In this document: positions 45,401 to 64,000 of the stretch, in pieces
Layout: each line of letters opens with the position of its first letter
Numbering within the stretch: position 1 is the first letter of the stretch
Source of the DNA: Klebsormidium nitens
Taxonomy: Eukaryota; Plantae; Klebsormidiophyceae
Length of the DNA stretch: 64,000 nt
NCBI GenBank assembly: GCA_000708835.1
Contig: DF236980.1
Span: forward strand, 271,441-335,440
Direction of reading: 5' to 3'
Program-made: the position numbers and the translations under genes
Notes under the pieces: generated by a model
The model's database searches: none
What the model saw: the letters and a program-made list of their open reading frames with translations, nothing else
What the model was told of the DNA's origin: nothing

Positions 45401-48400
45401 GGCAACTCGCAGTGCCTGAGAGTCCTCTTGTTGGGCTGGAACCAAGGCTGGAAGGATGGTGGTTGGAAGGATGCTCCATTGCTATCTTGTTGCACCATTT
45501 CTGAATGTCACGGCTTAAAAGACCCAAGAGGCAGAGACTTTTAGTCTGTGTCTCTGGCAGCGACTTTGTTCGTGTTGATTCGTGTTGTTGCAATTTCCAT
45601 CCAATCTTGGCAATGCTGAGAGCAGATCGAGAAAGCTACGTCATGTTTCGCGAAACCTGCAAACTGGGCCGATTGTTCGTGCAAACCTTCGCAGGCGAGC
45701 GAGAACGGGCGACCCAGGCCAAAGAAGCCGCGATCGTGACCGGAAAGGACGCGCTCGCTGCGGCCCAAAAGCAGCACCGCGCCGAGCTGCGCAAGGGCGG
45801 GGAAACCAACGCGGGCGACACGATCCGCGTACTCAGGGTCGAGTTAGCGGAGGTAACCGAGCGGCTTAACCAAACCCGGAAGCAACTAGATACGGCGGAG
45901 AACCGTTGCGAGGAGCTGGCGAAGGAACTCCGCAACAAGGCCCAGGAGAACTCGAGACTCGCCGCGGAGATTGCGGCGGTTAAGATAACCAAGATTGGTT
46001 TAAGCGAGGAGGGTTTGGTAACCCCGCGGAAGGGGATTCCGCCGTTGGCGGCGGAGCGCAGCGGGGGGAGAGTGCTACAGGTGGCGTCGCTCTCGCAGGC
46101 GTTGGAGGAGGCGCAGAGATGGTGAGTCGCTCAGAATTTTCTCACGATCAAAGGCATTGGTTCTGAAGCAATTGATGATCTAAGTCGAGTCAAAACGTTC
46201 TAGAAGGGCAGGCCTTGGAGTTCAGCCCGGTATGGACATCTCTTGCGATCCTAAGTGGCTTCTCAACATGCGATTTGAATCGGACTGGAGTCCCTTGTTT
46301 CAATGTTGTTCCTTTGGACTTGATTTCTCCAAATCAGGAGACCATCGTTTTGCATGCGATTGCGTGCTTTTCAATAGATTCATCCGTTCTTCCCACAGGC
46401 CTCGCAATCCCTTATCTCTGGCACACTTTGCGTCCTAGCTCCGACAGTTCAACTCGACACTTCGATTTCATCCGTTCTTTCCACATTGCCTCCCAATCAG
46501 AGAACAGCCTTTTTCGCATTCACTTCCAAGGCTTCAACTCGACACTCAACCATCTTTCGTTCTTTCCCAGGGCCTCCCAAGCCGAGGACAGCCTTCGCAT
46601 GCGCGAGCAAGCAGTCGCCGAGGCAGAGGAGGTGCGCATGAGCCTGGAGCGGCGCGTGAAGGACGCGGAAACTAGGATGGCGGAAATGGGCGCCAGCCTG
46701 GAGAGGAAGGCGACCGAGGCGGCGCAGCTGCGGCAGGAGCTCGACGAGGAGCGCGAGGAGCGGGGTAGGCTGGAGGAGGATCTCGAGGTGGGTTAGCGGC
46801 CGGGTTAATGGGTGTGTTTGGGGGTTAGCGGAGGGTCTTTTTGAGGTTTGAGGAATGTGCTCTTATTTGAATCTGATGGACAAGGAGCGGGATCAGTGAG
46901 GCAAGCTGGAGGAGGACCTTGAGGTGGGTTAGCGGCCCGGTTAACGGGTGTTTGTGTGGGTCCGTGAGGGTGTTCCGGGTTGGTGGCTGGGTAACAACCT
47001 GAATCATACTCCGGTATAACGAGATTCGAGGCGTTGTCTCCGATTTTAGACTGGTGCGTGTGAAGCGCAAGGGTTTTGGATGCGAGGGCTGTGCAGAGTG
47101 GAGATCGTCGGACACGCAAGTCTCACCTTCGCACCTCTTGCGACGTCCTTCGTAACTCATTGTGTTTCCATCCGGAATGTAAGTCTTTCCAAGGGGCACT
47201 GGGTTGGAAGCCTTGGTGATTGTTGCCATCTCATGACGATCCTTGACTGAGGGATCTCGTCAATCTCTGACGTTAAGTTCGAATGTCTTACACCCTCGTG
47301 TACTTTACCCAGGCGCTCCAAGATGAGGCGGCCGCCAGCGACGCCGCCGCAATCGCGCAGCTCGCCGAGTCGGGCGCGCAGATCCAGTCGCTCACCGACG
47401 CCAAGACGCGCACCGAAGAACGCCTGTCGGCGCTCATGCGCGAGCGCGCCGAACTCGACGTCAAACTGGCGCTCCTGAAGCGTTCCAAGGAGGACGCCGA
47501 TGCGCAGCTGAAGAACGCGCGGGCCGCGATCGTGCAGCTCGAAGCGAAGCTGACGTCAGAGGAGGGCCGCTCGGCGGACCTCGAGGCGCAGCTGACGTCA
47601 GCGGGCGAGCGGGAGAGGAGACTGGGCGAGGAACTAGCGGCGGGTGAAAAGGAGATCGGGGAACTGACGCAGAGGGTCGGGGCGTTGGAAGGCGAGAAGC
47701 AGGGGCTTGAGGTTTTGGCGGAGAATCTGACGGGAGACCTCGAGGAGTCGCGCGATGAGACGGCGCAGCTCAAGAACGAACGAGAGGATATGAAGATTGA
47801 GTTAGCGCAGGTTAAGGCTAACAGCGCGGAGTTAGCGCGGGACCTTGCAGACACCAACGACGATCTCACCGACACTGAGAATAGGCTCGCTAAGAGCGAC
47901 GAGGACCGGAACAAGGCCTGGGAGGAAGTCGAGCGGCTAACCGGGGTCAAGGAGGAGCTTAATCAGCGGTTGAGCATGTTCACCGGGGAGATCCGTAACC
48001 TGAACGAGCGCCTCTCGGAGGTTATCGCCGAAGTCGCGGATCTTCACAAGAAGCTCGGCGCGCTACGGAGCGAGAAGCACGAAGCGGAGCAGTCGTCGGT
48101 GCAGGCCAAGGCCGCGGCGGCGGAACTGGAGCTGCAACTAGCGGCGGCGCAGAAACGCGTGGCCGAGCTCACGTCGAAACTGTCGGCATCCGAGCAGAGC
48201 AACCGCGAGGTTTCGTCGCTTCTCGCGGAAACCAAGGCCCAGAAGAAGGAGGTTGAAAGCGAGTTGAAGGAGACTCGCAGCGTGGTGGCGCAACTGGGTA
48301 ACGAGCTGACGGGGGTTAGGAACGAGGTTAAGGCGCGCGGGGCGGAGCTGGCCGCGGTTAAGGAGAAGATGGCGGCCAAGGTTAAGGAGGGCGAGGAGCG

Positions 48401-51400
48401 GGTTAGCAAGCTCAAGGGCGAACTGAGCGACGTGGTGCAGCGGGGCACGGAACTGGACAAGAAGTTCGGACAGGCCCTGCAGGTGAGCCGTTTGGAGCTG
48501 ATCTTATTTGCTTCGACACGTTTTGGATCTTGTAATCAGCCTGTAGTGTCGCCGCTCGGACAGACCCTGCAGCTCAGCCCTTTGGACCGAGCAAAATTGC
48601 GTTTTGAGTTCCCATTTTTGTGCTTTTTTTCGCCGTTACAGTATATACTTACCGACTGCGCGGTGGGATGAACGCCATTAGATCTAGATTTGGCTTGCCT
48701 GTCTTTGCCTCACATCCCTCACTTGCTCTCTTGCTCGAGACGAATGGACGGCGTCTTTGCTTTTGTGTCAGACTTCGCCACCTCTTCCCCAATGTCTCAT
48801 GTGGACCGTCGGAAAAGACGTCCCGCTTCTTTATTACCGAGGCCAGACATCCAAATATATGCCTTCCCCCTTTTGATCCTGATGCACTTTTGAGGCGATG
48901 TACCAAGTACTTAGGCTTGAGCAACAGAATATGGAATGACAGGAGAAACCCAGACCCTTGAGACATTCATTCAGTGGACGAGATGAGTTGGTGTGCTTTC
49001 GGGACCTCTTTCGTCACTTCTACATATTTTTTGTCACGTTCACAGCGTCTTACCTTCTCGAAACAAGTGGACATTGTTTGCCTCCATTCCGCAAAATCTC
49101 TGGTCCTTTGCATCCAACCAGCCCTTATCGGACGCCCATCCTCTGTTCCATTCTACAGGGCCTCGGCCAGCGCGACCAGGCGCTCCTGACCGCCAGCGAG
49201 GAGCAGCGGGCCCTGTTGGCGGCTCGATAACCTTTTTCTCCAATTTTTCAACTGACTTGTAATTCACCTCTCGTTTTACAGGGCCTCGCCCAGCGCGACC
49301 AGGCGCTCCTGACCGCCAGCGAGGAGCAGCGGGCCCTGTTGTCGGAGGTGGACACCCACAAAGGCGACGTCGCCAGGCTGGAGCACGAGCTGAACAGGGC
49401 CCTCGCGGACGCGTCCGAAACGTCGGCCAAGCTGTACAAAGCGTCCGCAAAGCTGGCGGAGACGGAGGCGGCGCTCGCGGAGATCAAGGAAGAGAAGGAG
49501 GGGCTGGAGACGGGGCTGAGCGCAGTGCAGCAAGAGAAGGCGGACGTGCAGGTGAGGGAGGGTTTGCAATAACCAGGTTTTCTAACTCTTTGGGACAGAC
49601 GTGCACGTGAGAGAGAGTTTGCAATAACCAGGGTTTTGAATCTGTGAGGGTCCGTCCGCTTCTGGTATTGCTGTTGATGCTTTGAGGTCTGTTTATCTCG
49701 AGTCCCTGGAAAGAGGTTTCCAGGTTTTGAAGTCTTCTTCGCAGACAAGTGCTGATATTCATTTCATGAGTGGCCTCGAAGGAGCACGAATCAGCGGTCA
49801 GAGGAAGAAAAGGAAGCTAGAGAAAGCGGTTGAGCAATCACCGAGTCCCGGCATTGAACTCGCGACATCCCATCTTGTCTGGTCGAGTCCGCACAATGTT
49901 GCGCCACTCGTGCTCGCAATCTGATCTCTCGTCAAACTTCTTTCCAGGTCCAACTGGCCCAGTCCAGCCGCGAGTGCGCGGAACTCACCGCCGCGCTCGA
50001 GGCCGCCCAGCACGAGCGCGCGCGCGTCGCCGCTGAGCTGAACAAGCTGAGCGCGGACCGTGATGACATCAGCGCGCTGCTCGCGGCGTCGACGGGCGAG
50101 GTGGCCGCGCTCAACACGAAGCTGGCGGAATCCGCCGGAGAGAGCGCAATTCTGAGCGGAAAGGTCGCGACGCTGAGCGCGGAGATCGGGGAGCTGCGGT
50201 CCAAGCTGGCGGGCGCATCCAACGCCAGGTACGCTTTCTTACTATTACATCATTGAAGTCAGAGACAATTTGCCCTATTTTGATACGGACAGACTTCGCT
50301 TACGGACTGCTTTGACAGAGTTTGAGTTGCTGATTCGAATGGACTCGGGTAATTGGTCGGAATCGTGAATGAAGTGGTACTTGATTGCTTCCGAGCGTAG
50401 CTCACATCACGTCACCCAAGATGGCTCATTTCAAAAGTTCGTTCATCGGACGGGTCCTACTGGGATTGCGTACGCTCGTCAACAACGCTCGCATGAGTGC
50501 GACAGTCTCCAGCAACTCGCGACCGTTAGCATTCTTATTCGCTTGACTTCGTACTTCTCCTGAAGCTCAGTTCGTCTCTTGCTTCCCAGGCTCGGCAACG
50601 ACGCTCGCATGGCCGCCACGTCAGCCCGCAGCTCGGACCTGTTTGCCAAGCTGGCGTCCGCGGACAGCCGCGTGGCGGAGCTCGAGGCGCGCCTGGCGGC
50701 CGTGGCGCAGCAACTAGAGGCGGAGCGCAGCGGCCACTCCAAGAGCGTCGAGCAGCTGCAGCAGCACGTCAGGAACGTGCGCGAGAGGTGCGCCCAGAAT
50801 CTGCCCGCTCTCGATGCTCTCAAAAATATTCAAAGGCGGATTTGATAGCGGGTCGATGCAATCGACAACTAAAAGGATACAGAAACGAGAGGCTTTGGTA
50901 TCAAGTGACTCAAACGAAGGCAATAGACATTGAAAAAGGTGGGAATGCTTCATCTGGGCTTGAATTGGATGTTGCTGCTGCGTTGTCCATTCTGTGGCGT
51001 ATTGTTGAATGGTAGCAAGCTCTGTCAACACCGTAAGACTGGAGGGGGCCGATGTCAGATGGTTCGATATCGACGGGCAATCCCGAAGTCAATACTTTTC
51101 GAACCCAAGTTTGTTCGTCAAAACGATTTGTTTATAAGGATTCAAGGTTGGATTCGATTCCTTCTCCTTGCTTGACGGGTTGTCAAGATTCTTTCGCCTG
51201 TCGAACGAAACAAGTTCCCTTTTACGGACCGAAGACTACAAGAGGACCGTCCTGTAAATCATTTCAGTCTGCCAGCACCCTTAGACCCTGCTATCCTTTT
51301 TGCTCGCCGCGGAGAAGGAGCCGAAGCATAAGGAGTCGCGGTGGCACATGACCTTGTTGTCTGCGTCTTTCCTCCTCGCCTTACCCTATCTCTCAGATGT

Positions 51401-53810: not shown

Positions 53811-54971
53811 AGATTTGAATCACAATCGTATGGGTGAACATGGGTGTGCTTGGAATTGCATTGGGTGGTCCGGTGGAGTAGAGTAGGTTACGCGAGTAGG
53901 ACCGTATTTCTCGACGGACAATTGTTACCGCACTGCTTTAGGTAGGGTTGTGGCTGAAACACAGAGTATGCTTCAATAGGTTGTAGCTTCGTTTTGCCCA
54001 TTGAGCGGGATACCCAACCCAAAAGTGCCGCCCAAGTCGACAGAATTGTTGGAGGCCTTGGTGCAACTTACTACTGGTGATGTCAGACCGGCTTACACTT
54101 CCATTTCAACCCAAGTCCTTGTATACTTGGGTGATTGCATCACTGATTGGGGTACTTTTCCCGCTGCATAACTATCATGTAACGTAACCCCTTAGCTTCA
54201 ACATATTAGCACGGGTAAGGGTCTTTGAAATAAACTTGCATGTCGTATGTGAATGGACGTGAGCTAATCTTGAAATTGGTTCAAAGGCCTAGGGCCTTCA
54301 AATTGAGCATGCATGTTGTCTCCGATTTATGCGGACAGCTAAAGTTGCACGCGCAACATATGCCAATACAGTAGTCTATCATCGTGGAATGCGCGTTTTC
54401 AAATGCCGACCATTTATCCAAGCATCAGGCCCTCAACAAACTCTTGGTCAGTTTGTATTTTTCTGCGTTGCAAGGAGGTTGAAAATGCAAAGTATACCAG
54501 CGTACATCAACATGGAAGAGAGATCCGCAGACGGCGAAGAGAATTGTTTGATGCAGTCAAGCAATTGCGTGAACATAGAATCCAGAACTGCGGCCCACTA
54601 GACTCACTTGCGTGCAGGCAAAAAGCCCGGCTAATTTGAGTTGAAAGGCTCAGCCATATATAGATCTTAAGCACGAGATGCACGCTTCACATCAGCGTTG
54701 TTCCGAATTGTGCATCATGTAATTCATGACCAGCTTGCACCATGTCATGCTTCGTCGTTTACAGCCTACTCCAACCCGTGATTCACATCGTCCACACACC
54801 TATCCACAAAGCGCTAGAGTTCAGGCCTTAAAAAAGGTATCCAGAGGGTGACCGTCCCACGACCGTCCCGAGGTATCTCACAACAAGGAACCTAACAAGC
54901 CAACTTACTCCAAAATCTGAACGTCCTTCTTTACACTTGTAAAGCTTCCCCGTTGTTGGATCCATCATCCT

Positions 54972-57888
54972 CTAGGCTATCCTAACGACGATGGGCTGTC
55001 CTGCACTATAGAATCGATCCAAAAACACCCTTATGAGCGACTTGCCCTCGTACACTGCTTCCCAGAGCAAGCAGCAGTACTGCATCAACAGACTACACAA
55101 CGACACCACAATGGATTGCACGAATAAGCGTTGGTCGATGTAAATGCGCGTTGCTCTGGAGCTCCCCAGGACGTACAGGGTGGACTGAAAAATGGCCTGG
55201 GGTAGCGACTCCAACAGCAGTTCAGTCAGTCCCCGAGCCTCGTGGTAACGCTCGAAGACGATGATCTCGTCCCCCCCATGCCAGATGAAGCCCAAACCTC
55301 TCCGCCACTGACAGGAGATCTTGTACGAGCACCCCCAGCAGCCCCACGGGCAACAGGAGTATTGTAACCAACCCAGAAAACACGGAATCCTGATTCCCCT
55401 CAACCGCTCCACTTATGCCCAGCTCTGGCAGCGGCCACAACCACCTCACACGCACCCCTTTCCACCCACGCACCGGGCTCCTGGTCGAGACCCAAGACTT
55501 GGCTACCATGTACGCCCCCACGACGAACGGTGCGCAGACGGACGCCAGGATGACCCACATAGGCCACGCCCCATAAACTTCGCTCAGCACTAGGAAGTCA
55601 GTGACGATGTCCACCACAGGTAGGACGCCCAGCGCAGCTCCCCACAAGAAGAGGCCACCACGCCTCCAGCTGCGCATAAGCGCAAACTTACGTCAGCTTT
55701 AAGGATGAGGAAACCAAGGCGGGCCAGTGTGAATCCCGTGTGAATGATCAGAAGTCACAGAGTTTCAAAATTTATGGGAATTCAAGCAAGCAGAAAAAGG
55801 GACGTATAGGTAAAGAGCGCAAAAGAACGACTTACCCATGGATCTGGCCCGCATCTACTTCTTTGAGACCGCTTCCTCGGGTTCGACGTCGCCAGCGGGC
55901 TACCACGACGATGGGAATGGTTGCCAACAGCACCGCGGAAGCGAACACCCCGAAAACGAGCGCGGTGACCTTCTTCGCTTCAGGGTTGCCACACAGGTTG
56001 CCCGCCTGGACTCTCGAGAAACCGACTCCCGTGTACGCCCTCCCTTCGGGCCCAAGATCGATGTTGTCCACGAAATTGGGGTCCATCAAGTCGTAGACTG
56101 TGCCTCGTGCATTTTTAAGAGTATTGGTAAACGGGTTGGTAGCGTTGCTTAAGTCATAGACTGGGTAAGGAATGTCACCGTTGAGGAAGATCGATATTCT
56201 ACCCAAGCACACCCTTCTCCGCGTGCTACGCGGTAATGTCGCCCCAGTGCCCGCTAAGTTGACAATGCACCCTTCATCGCAGCCTCCCCAGAATTGGATG
56301 CTATCGAGATGGGGGTGCGAGCCCGTCAGGTTGACAATCTTGCAGGAGTTTGGCACAGACGAAAGATCCAGGTCTTTCGTGAACGAGTTACCAATGGACA
56401 GCGCCACATATGTGACATTGGTGTTTTTGAATGAAGAGGGTAGAGGGCATGTGAGCCCTAGGGTTGTCAAGAATCGAAAGTGGGACAAGTCAAGCCTTTC
56501 GCAAGTTGTGTCGGTAAAACTGAGGTTAAGGGTACCAAGACCCACAAGGCTGCCGAGCTGCGGGGGAATGGGGCCCGAGAGGTAAGTGGAAGAGAGATCG
56601 AGGCTGCTAAGCAGGCTGAGCTGGCCGAGTTGCAGGGGGATGGCCCCACGAAGGTCATTATGATTGAGAGAGAGATATGCAAGCTTGGTGAGGCTGCCAA
56701 GCTGTGGGGGGATTAAGTGCAAGAGGTCGTTGAAAGAGAGGTCGAGGTCGCTAAGATCAGCAAGGTTGCCAAGCTCTAAGGGTATGGAGCCCGAGAGGTC
56801 GTTATTGTTAAGCTGGAGATATGCAAGCTTGGTGAGGTTGCCGAGCTGTGGGGGGATTGGGCCAGAGAGCTTATTGCTGGAGAGGTAGAGGCCTTCCAGT
56901 TTCGCGAGTTTGCTAAGCTCCAAGGGAATGGGGCCAAGGAGGCGGTTGTTACTGAGGTCGAGAAATTGGAGACTAGTAAGATTCCCGAGTTGGCCGGGGA
57001 TGAGGCCTGAGAGGTAGTTGTTGCGAAGGGAGAGGATTTGAAGCTCGGAAAGGGTGCTGAGCTGCGGGGGAATAAGGCTGAATTTGTTACTGTCGAGGTA
57101 GAGGACTTGGAGGCTGGTGAGATTGCCGAGCTGCGGGGGGATAGGGCCCCAGAGTATGTTGCCATTGAGTAGTAATGTTTGGAGGCTAGTGAGGCCGCCG
57201 AGCTGCGGGGGGATGGGGCCTGAGAGAGTGTTGCTCCCAAGAGCAAGCGTGATGAGCCTGGTCAGGTAGCTAAGCTGCGAAGGGATGGGGCCAGAAAGGC
57301 TGTTTTTGAAGAGCTTCAGCTCTTTGAGCAACGTGAGTTGGCTAAGCTCAGGCGGGATTGGGCCGGAGAGGTTATTGTTGGAAAGGGCAAGGTTAGAAAG
57401 GCTGGTCAGGCTGCCGAGTTCAGGCGGGATGGGGCCAGAAAGGCGGTTATTGCTGAGGGAAAGTCTGGTGAGGTAGGCCAGGCTGCCAAGCTTCACAGGG
57501 ATGGGGCCGGAGAGATTGTTTTCGAAGAGGTAAAGTTTGGTGAGGTAGGTCAGACTGCCGAGCTCTGGGGGAAGGGGGCCGGAGAGGTTGTTGCCGCCGA
57601 GAACAAGTGTGTGAGGTTGGTCAGGGAGCCGAGTTGGGGGGAAATGGGCCCAGAGAGTTTGTTGCCGACAAGACTAAGGTAGGTGAGGTTGGTCAACCTG
57701 CCAAGCTCGGGGGGGATGGTGCCGTTGAGGCCTTTATACCCAAGGTCTATTTTGCTCTGGTTCCAAAGTGGGCCCTTGACTAGGTTTCCAATCTCTTCCA
57801 TAGTGGCTGAGCGCACCTCGCCCATGAGCCTGCACCCGCACAGGATCACCAGGACCAGCAACCTCACGCACAGGGGAGATGGAAGCAT
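54972..57888 (-). CDS. Signal peptide + ~18 plant-type LRRs + TM + XK-related-like multipass membrane domain; two frameshifts (pseudogene or sequence error)
   Basis: ATG 57888 gives MLPSPLCVRLLVLVILCG, then LxxLxxLxLxxNxLSGPIPPxLGx repeats, GNLCGNP and a TM helix. One intron (55835-55670). The C-terminal part reads VVDIVTDFLVL..ELLLESLPQAIFQSTLY..SIVVSLCSLL. Frameshifts at ~57601 and in the G7 run at 55277-55271. Confidence 0.8.
56500..57770 (-). repeat. LRR array, 72-nt period, ~18 units
   Basis: 24-aa consensus LxxLxxLxLxxNxLSGxIPPxLGx, read directly from the translation. Confidence 0.95.
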
Positions 57889-59599
57889 AGCCTTTGTGGA
57901 TGAGACCAGAGACTGTCTGCAGAGGCCATAAGTGAGCATTAGAGCATTCCAAAGCCAAATGTCTTTGATGGAAGAAGATTGATGCCTTGGATTGCTAGAG
58001 ACGAGAGACCCACGTTTGGCTATTGGAAGTGGGGTCCACCATAGGAATTTCTCATCCTCTGAAGCTTTGATCACAAGATGGACCTTTCCGTATACTTCGG
58101 CGATGCATACAGAGAGTATACTAAAGAGTCATGGTAAGAAATTGGGAAGCAACCAAGACCAATACATAGCGACGAAATATTAGGATCTGATGGAAAAAGA
58201 ACGAGATTAGAAACATCGACTCTGACTAGAACCCATTGGTCCAGCTACTACTAGCTACAACATGCGTGGCAGTTGATAATTGAAAGGCGCACTTCCACAA
58301 ACAGCAGCTCTGAAGGAAGTCCTTCAGAGCTGTTTTTCCACTCTCACCTTTCAGAGTTTCAGCAGTACAGCAAATGATGGAAAAAGAGGGGGTTTATCCA
58401 CAGTGACACGGTCTTCAAAGAGCCCACCAATACTCACCTTGACATGCCAAGTAGCAACGCAAGCTGCAAGCCACCAAACCAACCGGCCTTTTCACCATCC
58501 AAAATCTACAGAAGTGCCAAGCCGAACAGGCCTTGGAACCTCCCTTCCTCGTCTTTCTTGGCACTCTCCCATCCAAGACCCAGGGCCACAGAAATGCCAA
58601 GCCATTAACAGGCCTTGGCAACTCCCTCCTTCAGTTTTCTTCCAAGGCACTCCCTCCTCCGCCATTGAACAGATGCATGCACGATCGCTCTGACAAATCT
58701 ATCGCGCAAATCGCGGTAGTGTTGACATCGTCAACAACGACCCCCGGGCCGGGCCTCTGGAGTCTGCATGGCAATCATTGCAACGTCCTACCGGGGCCTG
58801 AAACGCGGCCGCGTCGGCCAGGGGGGCCCAGGGCTTTGCCACCAACTTTCACCGGTGCCGGCTGTCTAATGGCCCTCCTACATTGCTGACCGGCTGGCCA
58901 CACGGGCTAAAGCACCGGGCGCCGGGTTTGCCTAGGCGCCCAGCATTTTTTGCCGGCTTTCCAGCCGGTGGGTACGTGCCTTCGGCACCGGTGCATCTGT
59001 CATATCTGCCGGCCAGGTCCAGCTACACCGGTTCGTGGCAAGCAGTGGCGTCGGGCCGTCGGCATGGGTCAATGATTGAACGTGACCCCTTTCGCTGCGC
59101 CCGCCGCGCGGTATTCCGTACGGCGGAAATGATTGGCTCCGGTTTTGGCAGCGCGCCTTGATTTTCGCCCGGGCTTTCAAAGGAGACCCATGACCTGCAT
59201 GACCGACTCACCGAGTCTTAGCGAGACTGTGCGTCACTGTTGGCGCAAAATGGACGATCTACATTGTTGTATTAGTGTCTCCAGTAATTTTTCTGTCTTA
59301 ACACCCTCCCGTGCCGCGATTATGAATGAACAGATCTATGAAGCTGGCCGGTCGGTACCACACCTACACAACGCCGGTCCTCCGGTGTAAAACGCGTGAC
59401 AAGTAAGCTCCATATATATTAACAGCATGGCAAAATTCTTCAGACGAGCAACCCGGTGCTAAGGAGATCGGACTCACCTTCGTGGCCGGCCTAGCTTGAA
59501 GCTGCATATATACGGTGCAAGGGTTCTAGATTGACTGTCAACAAGCTGTCAACGAACAAACGAAGACAATCATATACAATATGGCAGGCTCCATCTAGA

Positions 59600-62500
59600 A
59601 TCAGGTATATGGGATCTGAGCAGTGCATGCAGGAACCATCCTGTTGGACTGGATCACCAAGGCTTTCGTGTGGTTGGAAGGATGCTCCGTTCTATTCTGG
59701 TGCACCAAATCTCCTTATCAGCCGACTCATTATACGACGTGGGTGTCAGCATGCTTAGTCTGTGTCTCTGGCAGCAACTTTATTCGTGTTGCTTCGTGAT
59801 GCAACTCTCATGACGTACTTCATGGCGAAGCTGAGAGCAGAACGCGAAAGTCACGTCAGCTTTCGCGGAACACGCAAACTCAGGGCTGATTGTTGTTGCA
59901 AACCGTTTCGCAGGCGAGCAAGAAAAAGCGACCAAGGCCAAAGAAGCGGCCCTTGTGACCGGAAAAGACGCCCTTGCCGCAGGCCCAAAAGCAGCACCGC
60001 GCCGATGTGCGCAAGGGCGGGGAAACGAACGCGGGCGACACGATCCGCGTACTCAGGGTCGAGTTAGCGGAGGTAACCGAGCGGCTTAACCAAACCCGGA
60101 AGCAACTAGATACGGCGGAAAACCGCTGCGAGGAGCTGGCGAAGGAACTGCGCAACAAGGCACATGAGAACTCGAGGCTCGCCGCGGAGATTGCGGCGGT
60201 TAAGATAACCAAGATCGGGTTAAGCGAGGAGGGCTCGGTAACCCCGCGGAACGGGATTCCGCCGTTGGCGGCGGAGCGCAGCGGAGGCAGGGTGCTACAG
60301 GTGGCGTCGCTCTCGCAGGCGCTAGAGGAGGCTCAGAGATGGTGAGTCGGATAGGGAGTTTTCGGCGGTCGACAAGTCGTTAATGGTCGTCTGACCAATG
60401 TTTCGAGTCTTTCAAGGTGTCGACTTGGTCTTACAAGGGCAGACGTTCTGAACTTTGCCCCGCTTATCGACAAGGCGTTTGCTATTGAGAGTCCTTCTTA
60501 GTGTGCCGCCTGGATTCAACTCTGTGAACCTTCGCAAAGCCGCCCCCAATCTTCTGGGTTTGGATGCAAGAGCCCCGACCTTATCTCCTGTCTGGCAGAT
60601 TCTTCTTTCAAATGCTTCCGCTTCTTGATGTAGGGCCTCCGCGTTTGCGCGAGAATTTATGCTTGTCTTTTATGTCTCCGATTTCAAACTCACCCTCTAT
60701 TCGTCACTTGGAGTTGGCAATAGCTGACAATTGCAACAACCAACCTGCGAGATCTGAGTCTCCGCCCAGTACCTTCGAAACGCCTTCTTATTTCTGAAGC
60801 CTTCCCCATCACCCCTTACACAGCTTTTCAGGCCTTGATCTCTTTTCGGGTTCTTCCAACACATATTTGCCTCTTATTCCGGAACACAGATTAACTTTCC
60901 AACGTTGCACCATTGGCAAATGCTGGCTTTTGGTGTCTAACGCTCTAAACGTTTGAACTTTTTGATTCCCACAAAGCCAAAATCGTCCGTTTTTCTCACA
61001 GGGCCTCCCAAGCCGAGGACAGTCTGCGCATGCGCGAGCAAGCAGTCGCCGAGGCCGAGGAGGTGCGCGTGAGCCTGGAGCGGCGCGTGAAGGACGCGGA
61101 AACTAGAATGGCGGAAATGGGCTCCAGCCTGGAGAAGAAGGCGACCGAGGCGGCGCAGCTGCGGCAGGAGCTCGACGAGGAGCGCGAGGAGCGGGGCAGG
61201 CTGGAGGAGGATCTCGAGGTGGGTTAGCGGCCGGGTTAATGGGTGTGTTTGGGGGTTAGCGGCCGGGTTAATGGGTGTGTTTGGGGTTAGCGGAGGGTCT
61301 TTTTGAGATTTGAGGAATTTGCTCTTATTTGAATCTGATGGACAAGGAGCGGGATCAGGGAGGCAAGCTGGAGGAGGACCTCGAGGTGGGTTAGCGGCCC
61401 GGTTAACGGGTGTTTGTGTGGGTCCGTGAGGGTGTTCCGGATTGGTGGCTGGGTAACAATCTGAATCATACTCCGGTATAACGAGATTCGAGGCGTTGTC
61501 TCCGATTTTAGACTGATGCATGTGAAGCGCAAGGGTTTTGGATGCGAGGGCTGTGCAAAGAGGAGATCGTCGGACACGCAAGTCTCATCTTCGCACCTCT
61601 TGCGACGTCCTTCGTAACTCCTTGTGTTTCCATCCGGAATGTAAGTCTTTCCAAGAGGGCACTGGGTTGGAAGCCTTGGTGATTGTTGCCATCTCATGAC
61701 GATCCTTGACTGAGGGATCGCGTCAATTTTCTGACGTTGAAATCTAGATGTCTTACACCCTCGTGTACTTTACCCAGGCGCTCCAAGACGAGGCCGCCGC
61801 CAGCGACGCTGCCGCAATCGCGCAGCTCGCCGAGTCGGGCGCGCAGATCCAGTCCCTGACCGACGTCAAGACCCGCACCGAAGAACGCCTGTCGGCACTC
61901 ATGCGCGAGCGCGCCGAACTCGACGTCAAACTGGCGCTCCTTAAGCGCTCCAAGGAGGACGCTGACGCGCAGCTCAAAAACGCGCGGGCCGCGATCGTGC
62001 AGCTCGAAGCGAAGCTGATGTCAGAGGAGGGTCGCTCCGCGGACCTCGAGGCGCAGCTGACGTCAGCGGGCGAGCGGGAGAGGAGACTGGGCGAGGAACT
62101 AGCGGCGGGTGAAAAGGAGATCGGGGAACTGACGCAGAGGGTTGGGGCGTTGGAAGGGGAGAAGCAGGGGCTCGAGGTTTTGGCGGAGAATCGGACGGGC
62201 GATCTCGAGGAGTCGCGGGACGAGACGGCGCAGCTCAAGAACGAGTGCGAGGATATGAAGATTGAGTTAGCGCAGGTTAAGCCTAACAGCGCGGAGTTAG
62301 CGCGGGACCTTGCGGACACCAACGACGATCTGACCGACACTGAGAATAGGCTCGCTAAGAGCGACGAGAACCGGAACAAGGCCTGGGAGGAGGTCGAGCG
62401 GCTAACCGGGGTCAAGGAGGAGCTTAACCAGCGGTTGAGCATGTTTACCGGGGAGATCCGTAATCTCAACGAGCGCCTCTCGGAGGTTATCGCCGAAGTC

Positions 62501-64000
62501 GCGGATCTGCACAAGAAGCTCGGCGCGCTACGGAGCGAGAAGCACGAAGCGGAGCAGTCGTCGGTTCAGGCCAAGGCCGCGGCGGCCGAACTGGAGCTGC
62601 AACTAGCGGTGGCGCAGAAACGCGCGGCCGAGCTCGCGTCGAAACTGTCGGCGTCCGAGCAGAGCAACCGCGAGGTTTCGTCGCTGCTCGCGGAAACCAA
62701 GTCCCAGAAGAAGGAGGTTGAGAGCGAGTTGAAGGAGACTCGCAGCGTGGTGGCGCAACTGGGTAACGAGCTAACGGGGGTTAGGAACGAGGTTAAGGCG
62801 CGCGGAGCGGAGCTGGCCGCGGTTAAGGAGAAGATGGCGGCCAAGGTCAAGGAGGGCGCGGAGCGGGTTAGCAAGCTCAAGGGCGAACTGAGTGATGCGG
62901 TGCAGCGGGGCACGGAACTGGACAAGAAGCTTGGACAGGCCCTGCAGGTAAGGCGCTTGGATTTTACTTCCAACATTTTGTTTCTTATGACGTATTATTT
63001 CGAACTTGATACGACTTGCTTTCCTTGCCTGGTTTGCTGTCGTCGTTACTCGTGCCAGATTGGCGGCGTCAGGGTCTCCCTTGTCGAACTTCGCTCTGCG
63101 AACGAATGAAAAGTCGATTCAAATTTCTCTTGCACCTTTGCAAGACAACCTTTGGAAGGCATCCGCTGTCCATCTCGCTTCTTAAAGAGCAGGCTTTTGT
63201 TGTCTTGTTGTCTTTTGCGTGTGCTCCCTGATCGAACCACAACGTAGGGTTCAGGTTAGTGAAGGAGAATAGGAATTCTCGGCCAAAGAACCCTATCATA
63301 TTGACAATCCTTCTCCCAAACGAGGGATGCAGTTGGCGTGTGTTCCGGACCTCTTTGGGCCATATTGCTTTGCTACGGTCCTCTTCAAAGCAGCACAATT
63401 GGTCAGATCAAGTGATTGCTGCTTTCCTTTTTTCGAGCTCCTGCCATCTTTCCCTTCGCTAGCTCCTTCCTCTTCGATCTATAGGGCCTCGCCCAGCGCG
63501 ACCAGGCGCTCCTGACCGCCAGCGAGGAGCAGCGGGTCCTGTTGTCCGAAGTGGACACCCACAAAGGCGACGTCGCCAGGCTGGAGCACGAGCTGAACAG
63601 GGCCCTCACGGACGCGTCCGAAACGTCGGCCAAGCTGTACGAAGCGTTCGCAAAGCTGGCCGAGACGGAAGAGGCGCTCGCGGAGATCAAGGAAGAGAAG
63701 GAGAGCCTCGAGACGGGGCTGAGCGCGGTTCAGCAAGAGAAGGCGGACGTGCAAGTAAGAGGGGAAATCTCAGCTTTATGATCCTCAACTTTTGGCGGGC
63801 TGCCTTGTGTAACTTCGGTTTCCAAGACTGGGTGTTGTGTGAACGTAATCTGATCACAACCTGGAAGTTTTCATGAGAAATTCTCTGGTAAAGGTGGGTG
63901 CTTCGTGATTTTAGAGCCCTCGGAAACTTGAACAGCACGCTGCTGTAATGGCGCTAGCTTTCCGAGCCCCTCGTGGGGATCCCCCGGTAGCTATACGCGC
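59600..64000 (+). pseudogene. 5'-truncated paralogue of the giant coiled-coil gene (copies 45395-49570; may continue past the window)
   Basis: Exons 59914-60341, 61002-61218, 61778-62947 and 63485-63754 match 45695-46121, 46571-46787, 47313-48482 and 49282-49551. There is a 1-bp insertion near 59980, and no homologues of the upstream exons were seen before 59600. Confidence 0.7.

Follow-up and report, generated by a model that had tools for sequence, protein, structure and literature searches.

A leucine-rich repeat ectodomain joined to a half-XK-like membrane module in Klebsormidium nitens: a probable pseudogene of a green-algal receptor-like family

Receptors of the plant lineage with leucine-rich repeats (LRRs) are known to signal through kinases or kinase co-receptors, and the same ectodomain wired to an XK-like membrane module would represent a different output logic. 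A locus in the alga Klebsormidium nitens raises the question of whether such an arrangement exists, what its membrane module is related to, and whether this particular copy is a working receptor. It occupies 57888-54972, on the minus strand, of the window (by which we mean the whole stretch of 64,000 nucleotides analysed here, from contig DF236980.1), and consists of an LRR receptor part, one intron and a multipass membrane module. The locus is KFL_000310510 (100% match; the exons of the stretch rebuild the annotated protein exactly), and its assignment to a green-algal family of receptors with LRRs and a single-repeat XK-like module is one that we hold with good confidence. The explanation developed below, taken as a whole, we regard as probable. 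A first-pass annotation of this DNA had described an LRR ectodomain fused to an XK-like, scramblase-type domain, and every element that it described was found on the minus strand. No second copy of the gene was found within the window, and no kinase or additional exon was seen downstream of the module.

Layout of the gene and its relatives

The features of the gene are as follows.

57820-57888, minus strand: start codon (ATG 57888-57886), then a predicted signal peptide whose hydrophobic core precedes LRR 1; identical to the start of KFL_000310510
56539-57759, minus strand: LRR array of about 17 plant-type 24-residue units (Pfam LRR_1 and LRR_8; 24-residue motif periodicity)
57604/57603, minus strand: frameshift 1, loss of a single base within an LRR (three-frame translation; the LRR consensus resumes in the next frame)
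55976-56538, minus strand: juxtamembrane ectodomain region, about 190 aa, Cys-containing (paralogue conservation)
55901-55969, minus strand: receptor transmembrane (TM) helix TM0, a 23-residue hydrophobic stretch followed by RWRRRTR
From TM0 to the end of exon 1 at 55836, minus strand: basic linker
55670-55835, minus strand: intron, 166 nt, GTAAGT...GCGCAG, phase 2, joining both ORF frames without loss
54975-55668, minus strand: half-XK-like membrane module, split by frameshift 2 (end-to-end alignment with intact paralogues)
55597-55611, minus strand: DIVTD motif in helix a1 (direct sequence reading)
55271-55277, minus strand: frameshift 2, a G7 run with one extra G (intact paralogues imply six G)
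55223-55185, minus strand: ELLLESLPQAIFQ segment of exon 2
55197-55223, minus strand: ELLLESLPQ motif in helix a4 (direct sequence reading)
54974-54972, minus strand: stop codon

The ATG is followed by a hydrophobic, signal-like segment, in agreement with the signal peptide proposed earlier, and the LRR part is recognised by Pfam (LRR_1, E 8e-34; LRR_8, E 4e-26). The repeats are plant-type LRRs, as had been claimed, but their number is 16-17 regular units, evenly spaced from about 57759 to 56539, rather than about 18. The juxtamembrane region is non-canonical and ends in the residues GNLCGNPEA, with TM0 at 55969-55901, and these correspond to the GNLCG cap and TM helix that had been noticed. 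It is 57-67% identical to the equivalent region of the paralogues, and no Pfam family was matched by it. Atlas features yield a weak lead from this region to irregular LRRs.

The signal peptide, 24-residue LRRs, juxtamembrane region, single TM helix and basic stop-transfer sequence are shared with the plant LRR receptor-like kinases (LRR-RLKs) and receptor-like proteins (LRR-RLPs). Unlike an LRR-RLK, the algal protein has no kinase domain (no kinase family was matched by Pfam in any gene piece or paralogue), and instead of the short tail of an LRR-RLP, TM0 leads into a multipass module of about 230 aa. The splice predicted at 55835-55670 is a canonical GT-AG intron which joins the frames exactly as proposed, and the annotated model uses the identical junction. 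LGR-type GPCRs and other animal LRR multipass receptors likewise have an LRR ectodomain joined directly to a multipass output; the seven-helix, G-protein-coupled output of the LGR type, however, is unrelated to the algal module in fold and lineage.

The fusion of LRRs to the membrane module is also present outside this locus. A search for intact paralogues had been suggested, and LRRs and module occur together in the annotated K. nitens proteins P0009, P0010, P0004 and P0013, as well as in uninterrupted ORFs of relatives, including ORFs on environmental contigs. KFL_004840040 and KFL_003250200 are among the intact paralogues. A profile search with the module returned 129 representatives at E<=1e-3, and among 68 weaker profile matches 32 have LRRs. 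Proteins with LRRs and module are found in the chlorophyte Botryococcus braunii too, so the architecture extends beyond the early-diverging streptophyte in which the first-pass annotation had placed it. This is a green-algal type-I receptor-like family, whose members have a signal peptide, LRRs, a Cys-containing juxtamembrane region, TM0, a basic cytosolic linker and the module. The literature search returned no XK-related proteins in algae and none combined with LRRs, and the LRR plus half-XK design appears to be undescribed in the literature searched.

The membrane module and what it may do in intact members

About five further hydrophobic segments had been proposed to follow the intron. The module, of about 230 aa, is indeed multipass, although only four of the segments are TM helices and one is partly inserted, from the cytosolic side. 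In the AF2 model of paralogue P0010:466-705 (pLDDT 87.8, pTM 0.81; AF2 from a 7-sequence alignment gave pLDDT 61 and was not used) the order is helices a1 and a2, the partly inserted helix, a beta-hairpin, and helices a4 and a5. The beta-hairpin (model residues 127-137) lies in the cytosolic segment that links the partly inserted helix to a4. Both exon-2 pieces of the locus align end to end with the intact paralogues, at 67% and 75% identity, and the protein terminates some 20-40 residues beyond a5. The model contains one repeat unit only, and each family hit contains a single module. A second repeat or tandem module was considered and rejected, since the multi-stretch profile matches are collinear pieces of one module.

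XKR9 is built from a pair of related repeats, and each comprises four TM helices together with one helix that is only partly inserted (PMC8298096). The algal module shares the helix order of the N-terminal repeat (ND) of the XK-related proteins (PF09815; XKR8, XKR9, XKR4, XK and CED-8), and its cytosolic N-terminus is consistent with the topology expected after TM0. In the XKR family the hallmark is a conserved, buried cluster of acidic residues, borne by TM1 and TM3 of the ND (PMC8298096), and scrambling by Xkr8 requires D26, D30, E137 and E141 (PMC8500837). The two motifs to which the first-pass annotation had drawn attention can be read directly, as DIVTD at 55611-55597 and ELLLESLPQ at 55223-55197; the D-x3-D spacing of the former equals that of Xkr8 D26/D30, and the E-x3-E-x3-Q spacing of the latter equals that of E137/E141/Q145. 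The acidic pairs of a1 and a4 thus have the spacing of the residues that Xkr8 scrambling requires (PMC8500837) and that form the XKR9 ND hallmark (PMC8298096), the acidic cluster being mapped by motif and spacing against published residue numbers and not by a residue-level structural alignment.

The module differs from the XK-related proteins in having one repeat with four TM helices rather than two repeats with eight, in following an LRR ectodomain and an additional TM helix, and in being without a Pfam match. The characterised XK-related proteins are from animals, whereas the LRR-linked module is green-algal. No C-terminal caspase-cleaved inhibitory helix or regulatory tail was recognised in it. 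An XK-fold protein works with a single-pass partner bearing a large ectodomain in the case of Xkr8 with basigin or neuroplastin and of XK with Kell (PMC8500837). In the algal protein one chain contains both the single-pass portion with the ectodomain and the XK-like portion, which are fused rather than associated non-covalently or through a disulfide, and the ectodomain is made of LRRs rather than being Ig or peptidase-like. Basigin also touches the C-terminal half of Xkr8 (a9), which is absent from the algal module.

Within the family, the two Asp residues of DIVTD are conserved in 23/32 and 25/32 members. The acidic residues of a4 are not family-wide, E153 being Arg in 10 of the 32 and the Botryococcus members being without them. 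The Klebsormidium subfamily retains all four acidic residues, the a1 pair and the a4 pair. Positions that are near-invariant across the family are W35, D117, R145 and G168.

The first-pass annotation had put forward a direct coupling of ligand sensing to a membrane effector, which might scramble lipids, form a pore or bring about cell death. For the intact members a mechanism can be proposed, tentatively, and as a complete chain of events we think it rather unlikely to hold. The LRR ectodomain would bind an extracellular ligand, and oligomerisation would pair two single-repeat modules into an XK-like eight-helix assembly or change their packing in some other way. Lipid handling at the plasma membrane would then be altered by scrambling, or a lipid-transfer partner would be recruited via the cytosolic beta-hairpin. 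The output of such receptors would be something other than phosphorylation.

It is possible, although we lean against it, that the intact members are not scramblases and that the half-XK module serves as an anchoring or adaptor platform, either recruiting a VPS13-type bridge-like lipid-transfer protein via the hairpin or providing an interface for oligomerisation or for a co-receptor in signalling. XK and XKR2 bind the PH domain of VPS13A through a beta-hairpin of the second cytosolic loop (PMC9436381), and by analogy the cytosolic hairpin of the AF2 model could offer a comparable site. That the near-invariant positions are those four and not the acidic residues of a4 would be easier to reconcile with a role in structure or as an interface than with a conserved catalytic path. 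The full acidic set kept by the Klebsormidium subfamily, however, argues the other way.

The proposal that the module handles lipids could be taken further, by analogy, to a semi-XK unit that works as a ligand-gated scramblase, in which an LRR-driven dimer would complete the XK-like eight-helix body in the plasma membrane and the extracellular ligand would directly trigger loss of lipid asymmetry; we consider this doubtful. SemiSWEET is a half-size, single-repeat transporter that dimerises, and SWEET is the two-repeat form. Their fold is unrelated to that of the algal module and the comparison is an analogy only, which suggests a dimer for a single repeat of a two-repeat fold. If a ligand-gated semi-XK scramblase did exist, it would mean kinase-independent signalling or a cell-death output in green algae, and it would serve as a present-day model for the ancestral state from which the two-repeat XK fold arose.

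Relation of the module to XK-related proteins

The AF2 model of P0010:466-705 was aligned structurally, with VIA-align, against 48,161 PDB representative chains. XKR9 (7p16_A) took rank 1 with Z 9.6 (rmsd 3.5, 152 residues aligned, chain 4-190), a score below about 13, the level at which the notes of the tool say that helical models can match by common arrangement alone. XKR4 (9boj_B) took rank 2 (Z 8.0) and XKR8 (8xej_X) rank 13 (Z 7.0, chain 7-182), and Z>=8 was reached only by XKR9 and XKR4 chains. A repeat of the alignment was consistent, with XKR9 7p14_A likewise at Z 9.6. A check of an AlphaFold model against XK structures had been suggested, and by structural alignment XKR9 and XKR4 were the best of all chains, through their N-terminal halves. 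The ND fold is therefore indicated by the top ranks, at Z values under the caution level for helical models, whereas the Foldseek search that had also been suggested gave no match at E<=0.001 against the PDB.

A link at the sequence level is provided by three intermediate proteins. The A2 profile, searched against 1.84 billion proteins, matches P0132, P0133 and P0126 at E 1e-4 to 4e-4, and these score 37.7, 17.9 and 22.1 bits, respectively, against Pfam XK-related (gathering cut-off 24.8), all within positions 4-173 of 337, the first half of the profile. Any Pfam XK signal is seen in only 3 of about 117 family hits. Neither piece from the window (E<=1) nor any of five paralogue modules (E<=10) matched Pfam XK-related, and the same was true of 49 further family members. 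Language-model atlas features linked the module to PF09815 clusters at 0.93 and 0.90; a fold search of the atlas yielded noise only. PDB sequence searches with A2, A4, P0132 and P0133 returned nothing relevant, a word search with P0132 returned only P0132 itself, and one with A4 returned more family members and no XKR.

The XK-like character claimed in the first-pass annotation thus stands in part: the two top structural ranks, the transitive link to PF09815, the language-model features and the acidic residues support it, while the single repeat and the failure of Pfam count against it. We give little credence to the view that the module is a small bundle of membrane helices with no kinship to XK, resembling it through chance short motifs and a common four-helix arrangement. 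Such a bundle would be in keeping with the lack of a Pfam XK match in any Klebsormidium member, with the empty Foldseek and atlas fold searches, and with Z values of 7-9.6, such as helical models can attain through arrangement alone; just below come Piezo, pannexin and designed bundles, at Z 7-8. Chance would nevertheless have had to place a family predicted beforehand from motifs at ranks 1 and 2 among 48,161 chains. The XK alignments are also the longest, at 150-156 residues where the other chains give about 100-120, and without exception they fall in the N-terminal half, which is the half over which the three algal-profile matches fit Pfam XK-related. The spacing of the acidic motifs identical to that in Xkr8 argues in the same direction, and the language-model features independently indicate PF09815.

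The module is not a full XK domain but one repeat, equivalent to the N-terminal domain of XKR9, and its distant homology to the ND of XK-related proteins from animals is a partly supported conclusion. XK-type proteins, which have so far been studied in animals, would by this homology be placed in green algae as a single-repeat form. The family makes the origin of the two-repeat XK fold a testable question, and likewise whether lipid scrambling needs anything beyond an N-terminal repeat and its acidic residues.

State of the KFL_000310510 copy

Two frameshifts had been reported in this gene, and they were located at 57604/57603 and in the G7 run at 55277-55271. The public gene model excises 57674-57565 as a 110-nt intron, bypassing frameshift 1, and the annotated protein stops 14 codons past the G7 run of frameshift 2. 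The public annotation of KFL_000310510 masks both.

Both frameshift sites are present unaltered in read-derived contigs of runs X1 and X3. One 4148-nt X1 contig and two X3 contigs cover 54900-58100 with 0 differences and 0 gaps, and the contigs rebuilt from X1 and X3 reads have a k-mer depth of 18-25; these runs possibly represent the sample behind the assembly itself and their sequencing platform is not on record, so a systematic homopolymer error at the G7 run could still be involved. RNA-labelled runs from several studies contain next to none of the words of the stretch, in contigs that drop rare transcripts, and the sole exact RNA-labelled piece is one 261-nt contig (depth 2.1) at 57141-57401.

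Because both frameshifts stand in the read contigs, RNA support is near nil and the gene model evades the lesions, this copy is probably a pseudogene and not a working receptor. Judged by sequence conservation its inactivation is most likely recent, since the module of the locus keeps 42 of the 44 positions at which seven intact members do not vary. It seems improbable to us that the gene is instead intact in the organism, with both frameshifts being sequencing or assembly errors and the product a functional LRR-half-XK receptor with its full length of about 920 aa. A G7 homopolymer is a classic site of error, all pieces are open apart from the two indels and carry the conserved positions just mentioned, and the confirming runs may be the assembly's own source. 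Error of this kind fits poorly, however, with frameshift 1, at whose site there is no homopolymer longer than two, with the agreement of the X1 and X3 contigs at both sites, and with the scarcity of the stretch in RNA-labelled runs. As a probable pseudogene the locus adds little functionally, and it shows turnover within the family.

No RNA contig covers the junction at 55835-55670, and an ATG lies just upstream of exon 2 at 55677, but it is extremely improbable that the predicted intron has fused two adjacent genes in error, one for the LRR-TM portion and one for the multipass portion, as the GT-AG intron is canonical and frame-keeping, relatives carry LRRs and module within single uninterrupted ORFs of 667-768 aa, and the order of LRRs followed by module recurs in two Botryococcus proteins and in no fewer than 10 annotated proteins of K. 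nitens. A further run, X6, has the appearance of a bisulfite library.

Anatomy of the receptor locus and its public model

When the juxtamembrane/TM part of the receptor gene was used as query in a word search, Klebsormidium nitens KFL_000310510 came first with 100% identity; the next matches were paralogues with 57-67%. The gene is present as a single copy in the 64-kb window, and its features are as follows.

Features of the KFL_000310510 locus (all on the minus strand)
57888-57886, minus: start codon ATG, opening a frame with a hydrophobic signal-like beginning
~57759-56539, minus: plant-type leucine-rich repeat (LRR) array, 24-residue, regularly spaced, 16-17 regular units; Pfam LRR_1 E 8e-34, LRR_8 E 4e-26
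between 57604 and 57603, minus: frameshift 1, one base missing, within an LRR
55976-56538, minus: Cys-containing juxtamembrane ectodomain region, ~190 aa, C-terminal end GNLCGNPEA
55969-55901, minus: TM helix, 23 residues, then a basic linker
55835-55670, minus: canonical intron (GTAAGT...GCGCAG), 166 nt, phase 2
55669-54972, minus: second exon, hydrophobic helices
55611-55597, minus: DIVTD motif, in the second exon
55277-55271, minus: frameshift 2, a G7 run with one G in excess
55223-55185, minus: ELLLESLPQAIFQ motif segment, in the second exon

The signal-like start, GNLCG, TM helix, DIVTD and multipass exon described in the first-pass annotation can all be read on this strand, its splice coordinates agree with ours, and both of the frameshifts it reported could be located. 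The LRR array is likewise of plant type, although the earlier count of ~18 repeats falls to 16-17 regular units. The juxtamembrane region (57-67% identity to paralogues) matched no Pfam family; its language-model (atlas) features hint only weakly at irregular LRRs (recognition 1306).

Joining 57888-57675, 57564-55836 and 55669-55222 reproduces the deposited 796-aa protein exactly. The public model drops 110 nt of LRR-coding sequence (57565-57674) as a GT..AG "intron", and frameshift 1 is thereby compensated and hidden. Its stop falls 14 codons past frameshift 2 (window 55222-55272), so the model lacks helices a4 and a5 of the C-terminal membrane module. Modelling round two indels has therefore made the deposited protein an artefact. 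Four intact K. nitens paralogues (P0009, P0010, P0004 and P0013) read through both frameshift sites. In comparisons based on the window pieces as they stand, the exon-2 pieces align end to end with intact paralogues (67% and 75% identity) and retain 42 of the 44 positions invariant in seven intact members.

Reads from run X1 rebuilt one 4148-nt contig (depth 18) and those from run X3 two contigs (depth 21-25), which across 54900-58100 show 0 differences and 0 gaps against the window; both indels are therefore present in the reads. A homopolymer sequencing error is a less probable explanation of the G7 run, as X1 and X3 are perhaps from the assembly's own sample and their platform is not on record, but frameshift 1 lies outside any homopolymer. 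Words from the stretch are almost absent from the RNA-labelled runs of several studies. Only one RNA-labelled contig, of 261 nt (depth 2.1) within the LRR array, matches exactly, and none spans the 55835-55670 intron or the module. We consider this copy to be probably a recently inactivated pseudogene. The anatomy of KFL_000310510, its probable pseudogene status and the masking of its frameshifts in the public model are newly brought out here.

Run X6 (DNA) differs from window 56576-57648 at 34 sites, every one C>T on the plus strand with some C kept; the run appears to be a K. nitens library treated with bisulfite. The gene is flanked by a ~4 kb direct repeat (45541-49550 and 59755-63753; 88-94% identity, ~14.4 kb spacing), each copy carrying a coiled-coil ORF of ~455 aa (47283-48671; 61748-63109) with weak ATG16/FPP-type coiled-coil matches. 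The pair may have arisen by segmental duplication or belong to a dispersed repeat.

Spread of the LRR-module fusion

At least 12 K. nitens proteins carry the module, the intact LRR-plus-module paralogues sought by the first-pass annotation among them. On environmental contigs, relatives have the LRRs and the module within one unbroken ORF (667-768 aa). With a profile built from seven Klebsormidium-type modules (A2), a search of 1.84 billion proteins returned 129 representatives at E<=1e-3; LRR domains occur in 32 of 68 weaker profile matches, plus most of ten others. In Botryococcus braunii, two proteins of 1140 and 1088 aa combine a signal peptide and an LRRNT-like cap with plant-type LRRs, a TM helix and the module. 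The design was earlier placed in an early-diverging streptophyte; with Botryococcus it spans streptophyte and chlorophyte algae. Literature searches found no published paper linking XK-related proteins with algae or LRR receptors. The present analysis adds the chlorophyte members, the three Pfam-positive bridge proteins and the residue-level parallel to the Xkr8/XKR9 literature set out below.

The annotated K. nitens protein P0007 (905 aa) runs from an LRR-plus-module gene directly into a second LRR array, apparently because the gene model joined two tandem members of the family.

Relationship of the module to XK proteins

Pfam XK-related (PF09815) matched neither the window pieces (E<=1) nor five paralogue modules (E<=10), and profile searches of PDB sequences with the module were blank. 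By language-model features, the nearest neighbours of both window pieces are PF09815 clusters (0.93 and 0.90). The A2 matches include three metagenome proteins, P0132, P0133 and P0126 (E 1e-4 to 4e-4), which score 37.7, 17.9 and 22.1 bits against Pfam XK-related (cut-off 24.8, exceeded by P0132); these matches all stay in the first half of the profile (positions 4-173 of 337).

In the AlphaFold2 prediction for paralogue P0010:466-705, built from a 32-sequence alignment (pLDDT 87.8, pTM 0.81), two long TM helices are followed by a partly inserting helix pair, a beta-hairpin, a second TM pair and a short amphipathic helix. Structural alignment to all 48,161 PDB cluster representatives ranked rat XKR9 first (Z 9.6, rmsd 3.5, 152 residues, chain 4-190), human XKR4 second (Z 8.0) and XKR8 thirteenth (Z 7.0, chain 7-182); only XKR9 and XKR4 reached Z 8 or above, all values lying below the threshold under which the tool advises caution with helical models. 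Foldseek, one of the checks suggested in the first-pass annotation, gave nothing significant with the module model, and XKR9 again came first when its weak list was re-examined.

Three independent lines (language-model features, the A2 profile bridge and structural alignment) thus point to XK. Because of the Foldseek result and the level of the Z values, the link is a supported remote relationship and not membership. XKR9 is built from two related repeats, each with four TM helices and a partly inserted helix (PMC8298096). Structural and Pfam matches are restricted to the XK N-terminal repeat, module proteins terminate shortly beyond a5, and the algal module is one XKR9-type repeat. The XK-like domain of the first-pass annotation stands as a likeness in features, profile and fold, but as one repeat only and with no direct Pfam XK-related match. 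Two modules per protein were rejected, as multi-stretch profile matches are collinear pieces of one module.

The three metagenome proteins also end after a5 and lie outside LRR fusions, a sign that single-repeat XK-like proteins may form a larger group.

Conserved residues, topology and possible mechanism

In the N-terminal domain, TM1 and TM3 bear a buried cluster of acidic residues that the XKR9 paper regards as characteristic of the family (PMC8298096). Scrambling by Xkr8 requires D26, D30, K/R134, E137, E141 and R183, and its proposed lipid path is built by a1, a2, a4 and a5 (PMC8500837); all these residues and helices belong to the N-terminal half. In the window, the D-x3-D of a1 and the E-x3-E-x3-Q of a4 are kept at the same spacing as in Xkr8. 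Among 32 family members W35, D117 (partly inserted helix), R145 (a4 start) and G168 are near-invariant; the a4 Glu residues are variable, with E153 replaced by Arg in 10. The Botryococcus proteins (P0078 and P0130) retain Y-D-x-V-T-D on a1, but the Glu residues of a4 are gone; both proteins also carry a low-complexity tail of ~130-180 aa with a further hydrophobic segment at its end.

The positive-inside pattern together with the XK fold would place the LRRs outside, with the receptor TM helix (TM0) crossing the membrane, both ends of the module in the cytosol, and its partly inserted helix and beta-hairpin facing the cytosol. Most economically, a ligand would act by altering the receptor's oligomeric state when it binds, by analogy with other LRR receptors. 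Two single-repeat modules could then pack into an XK-like body, the acidic interior of which may affect lipid movement. The module may also serve as an adaptor, a role compatible with oligomerisation: in XK and XKR2, a beta-hairpin of the second cytosolic loop binds the PH domain of VPS13A (PMC9436381), and the algal model has a predicted cytosolic hairpin ahead of a4.
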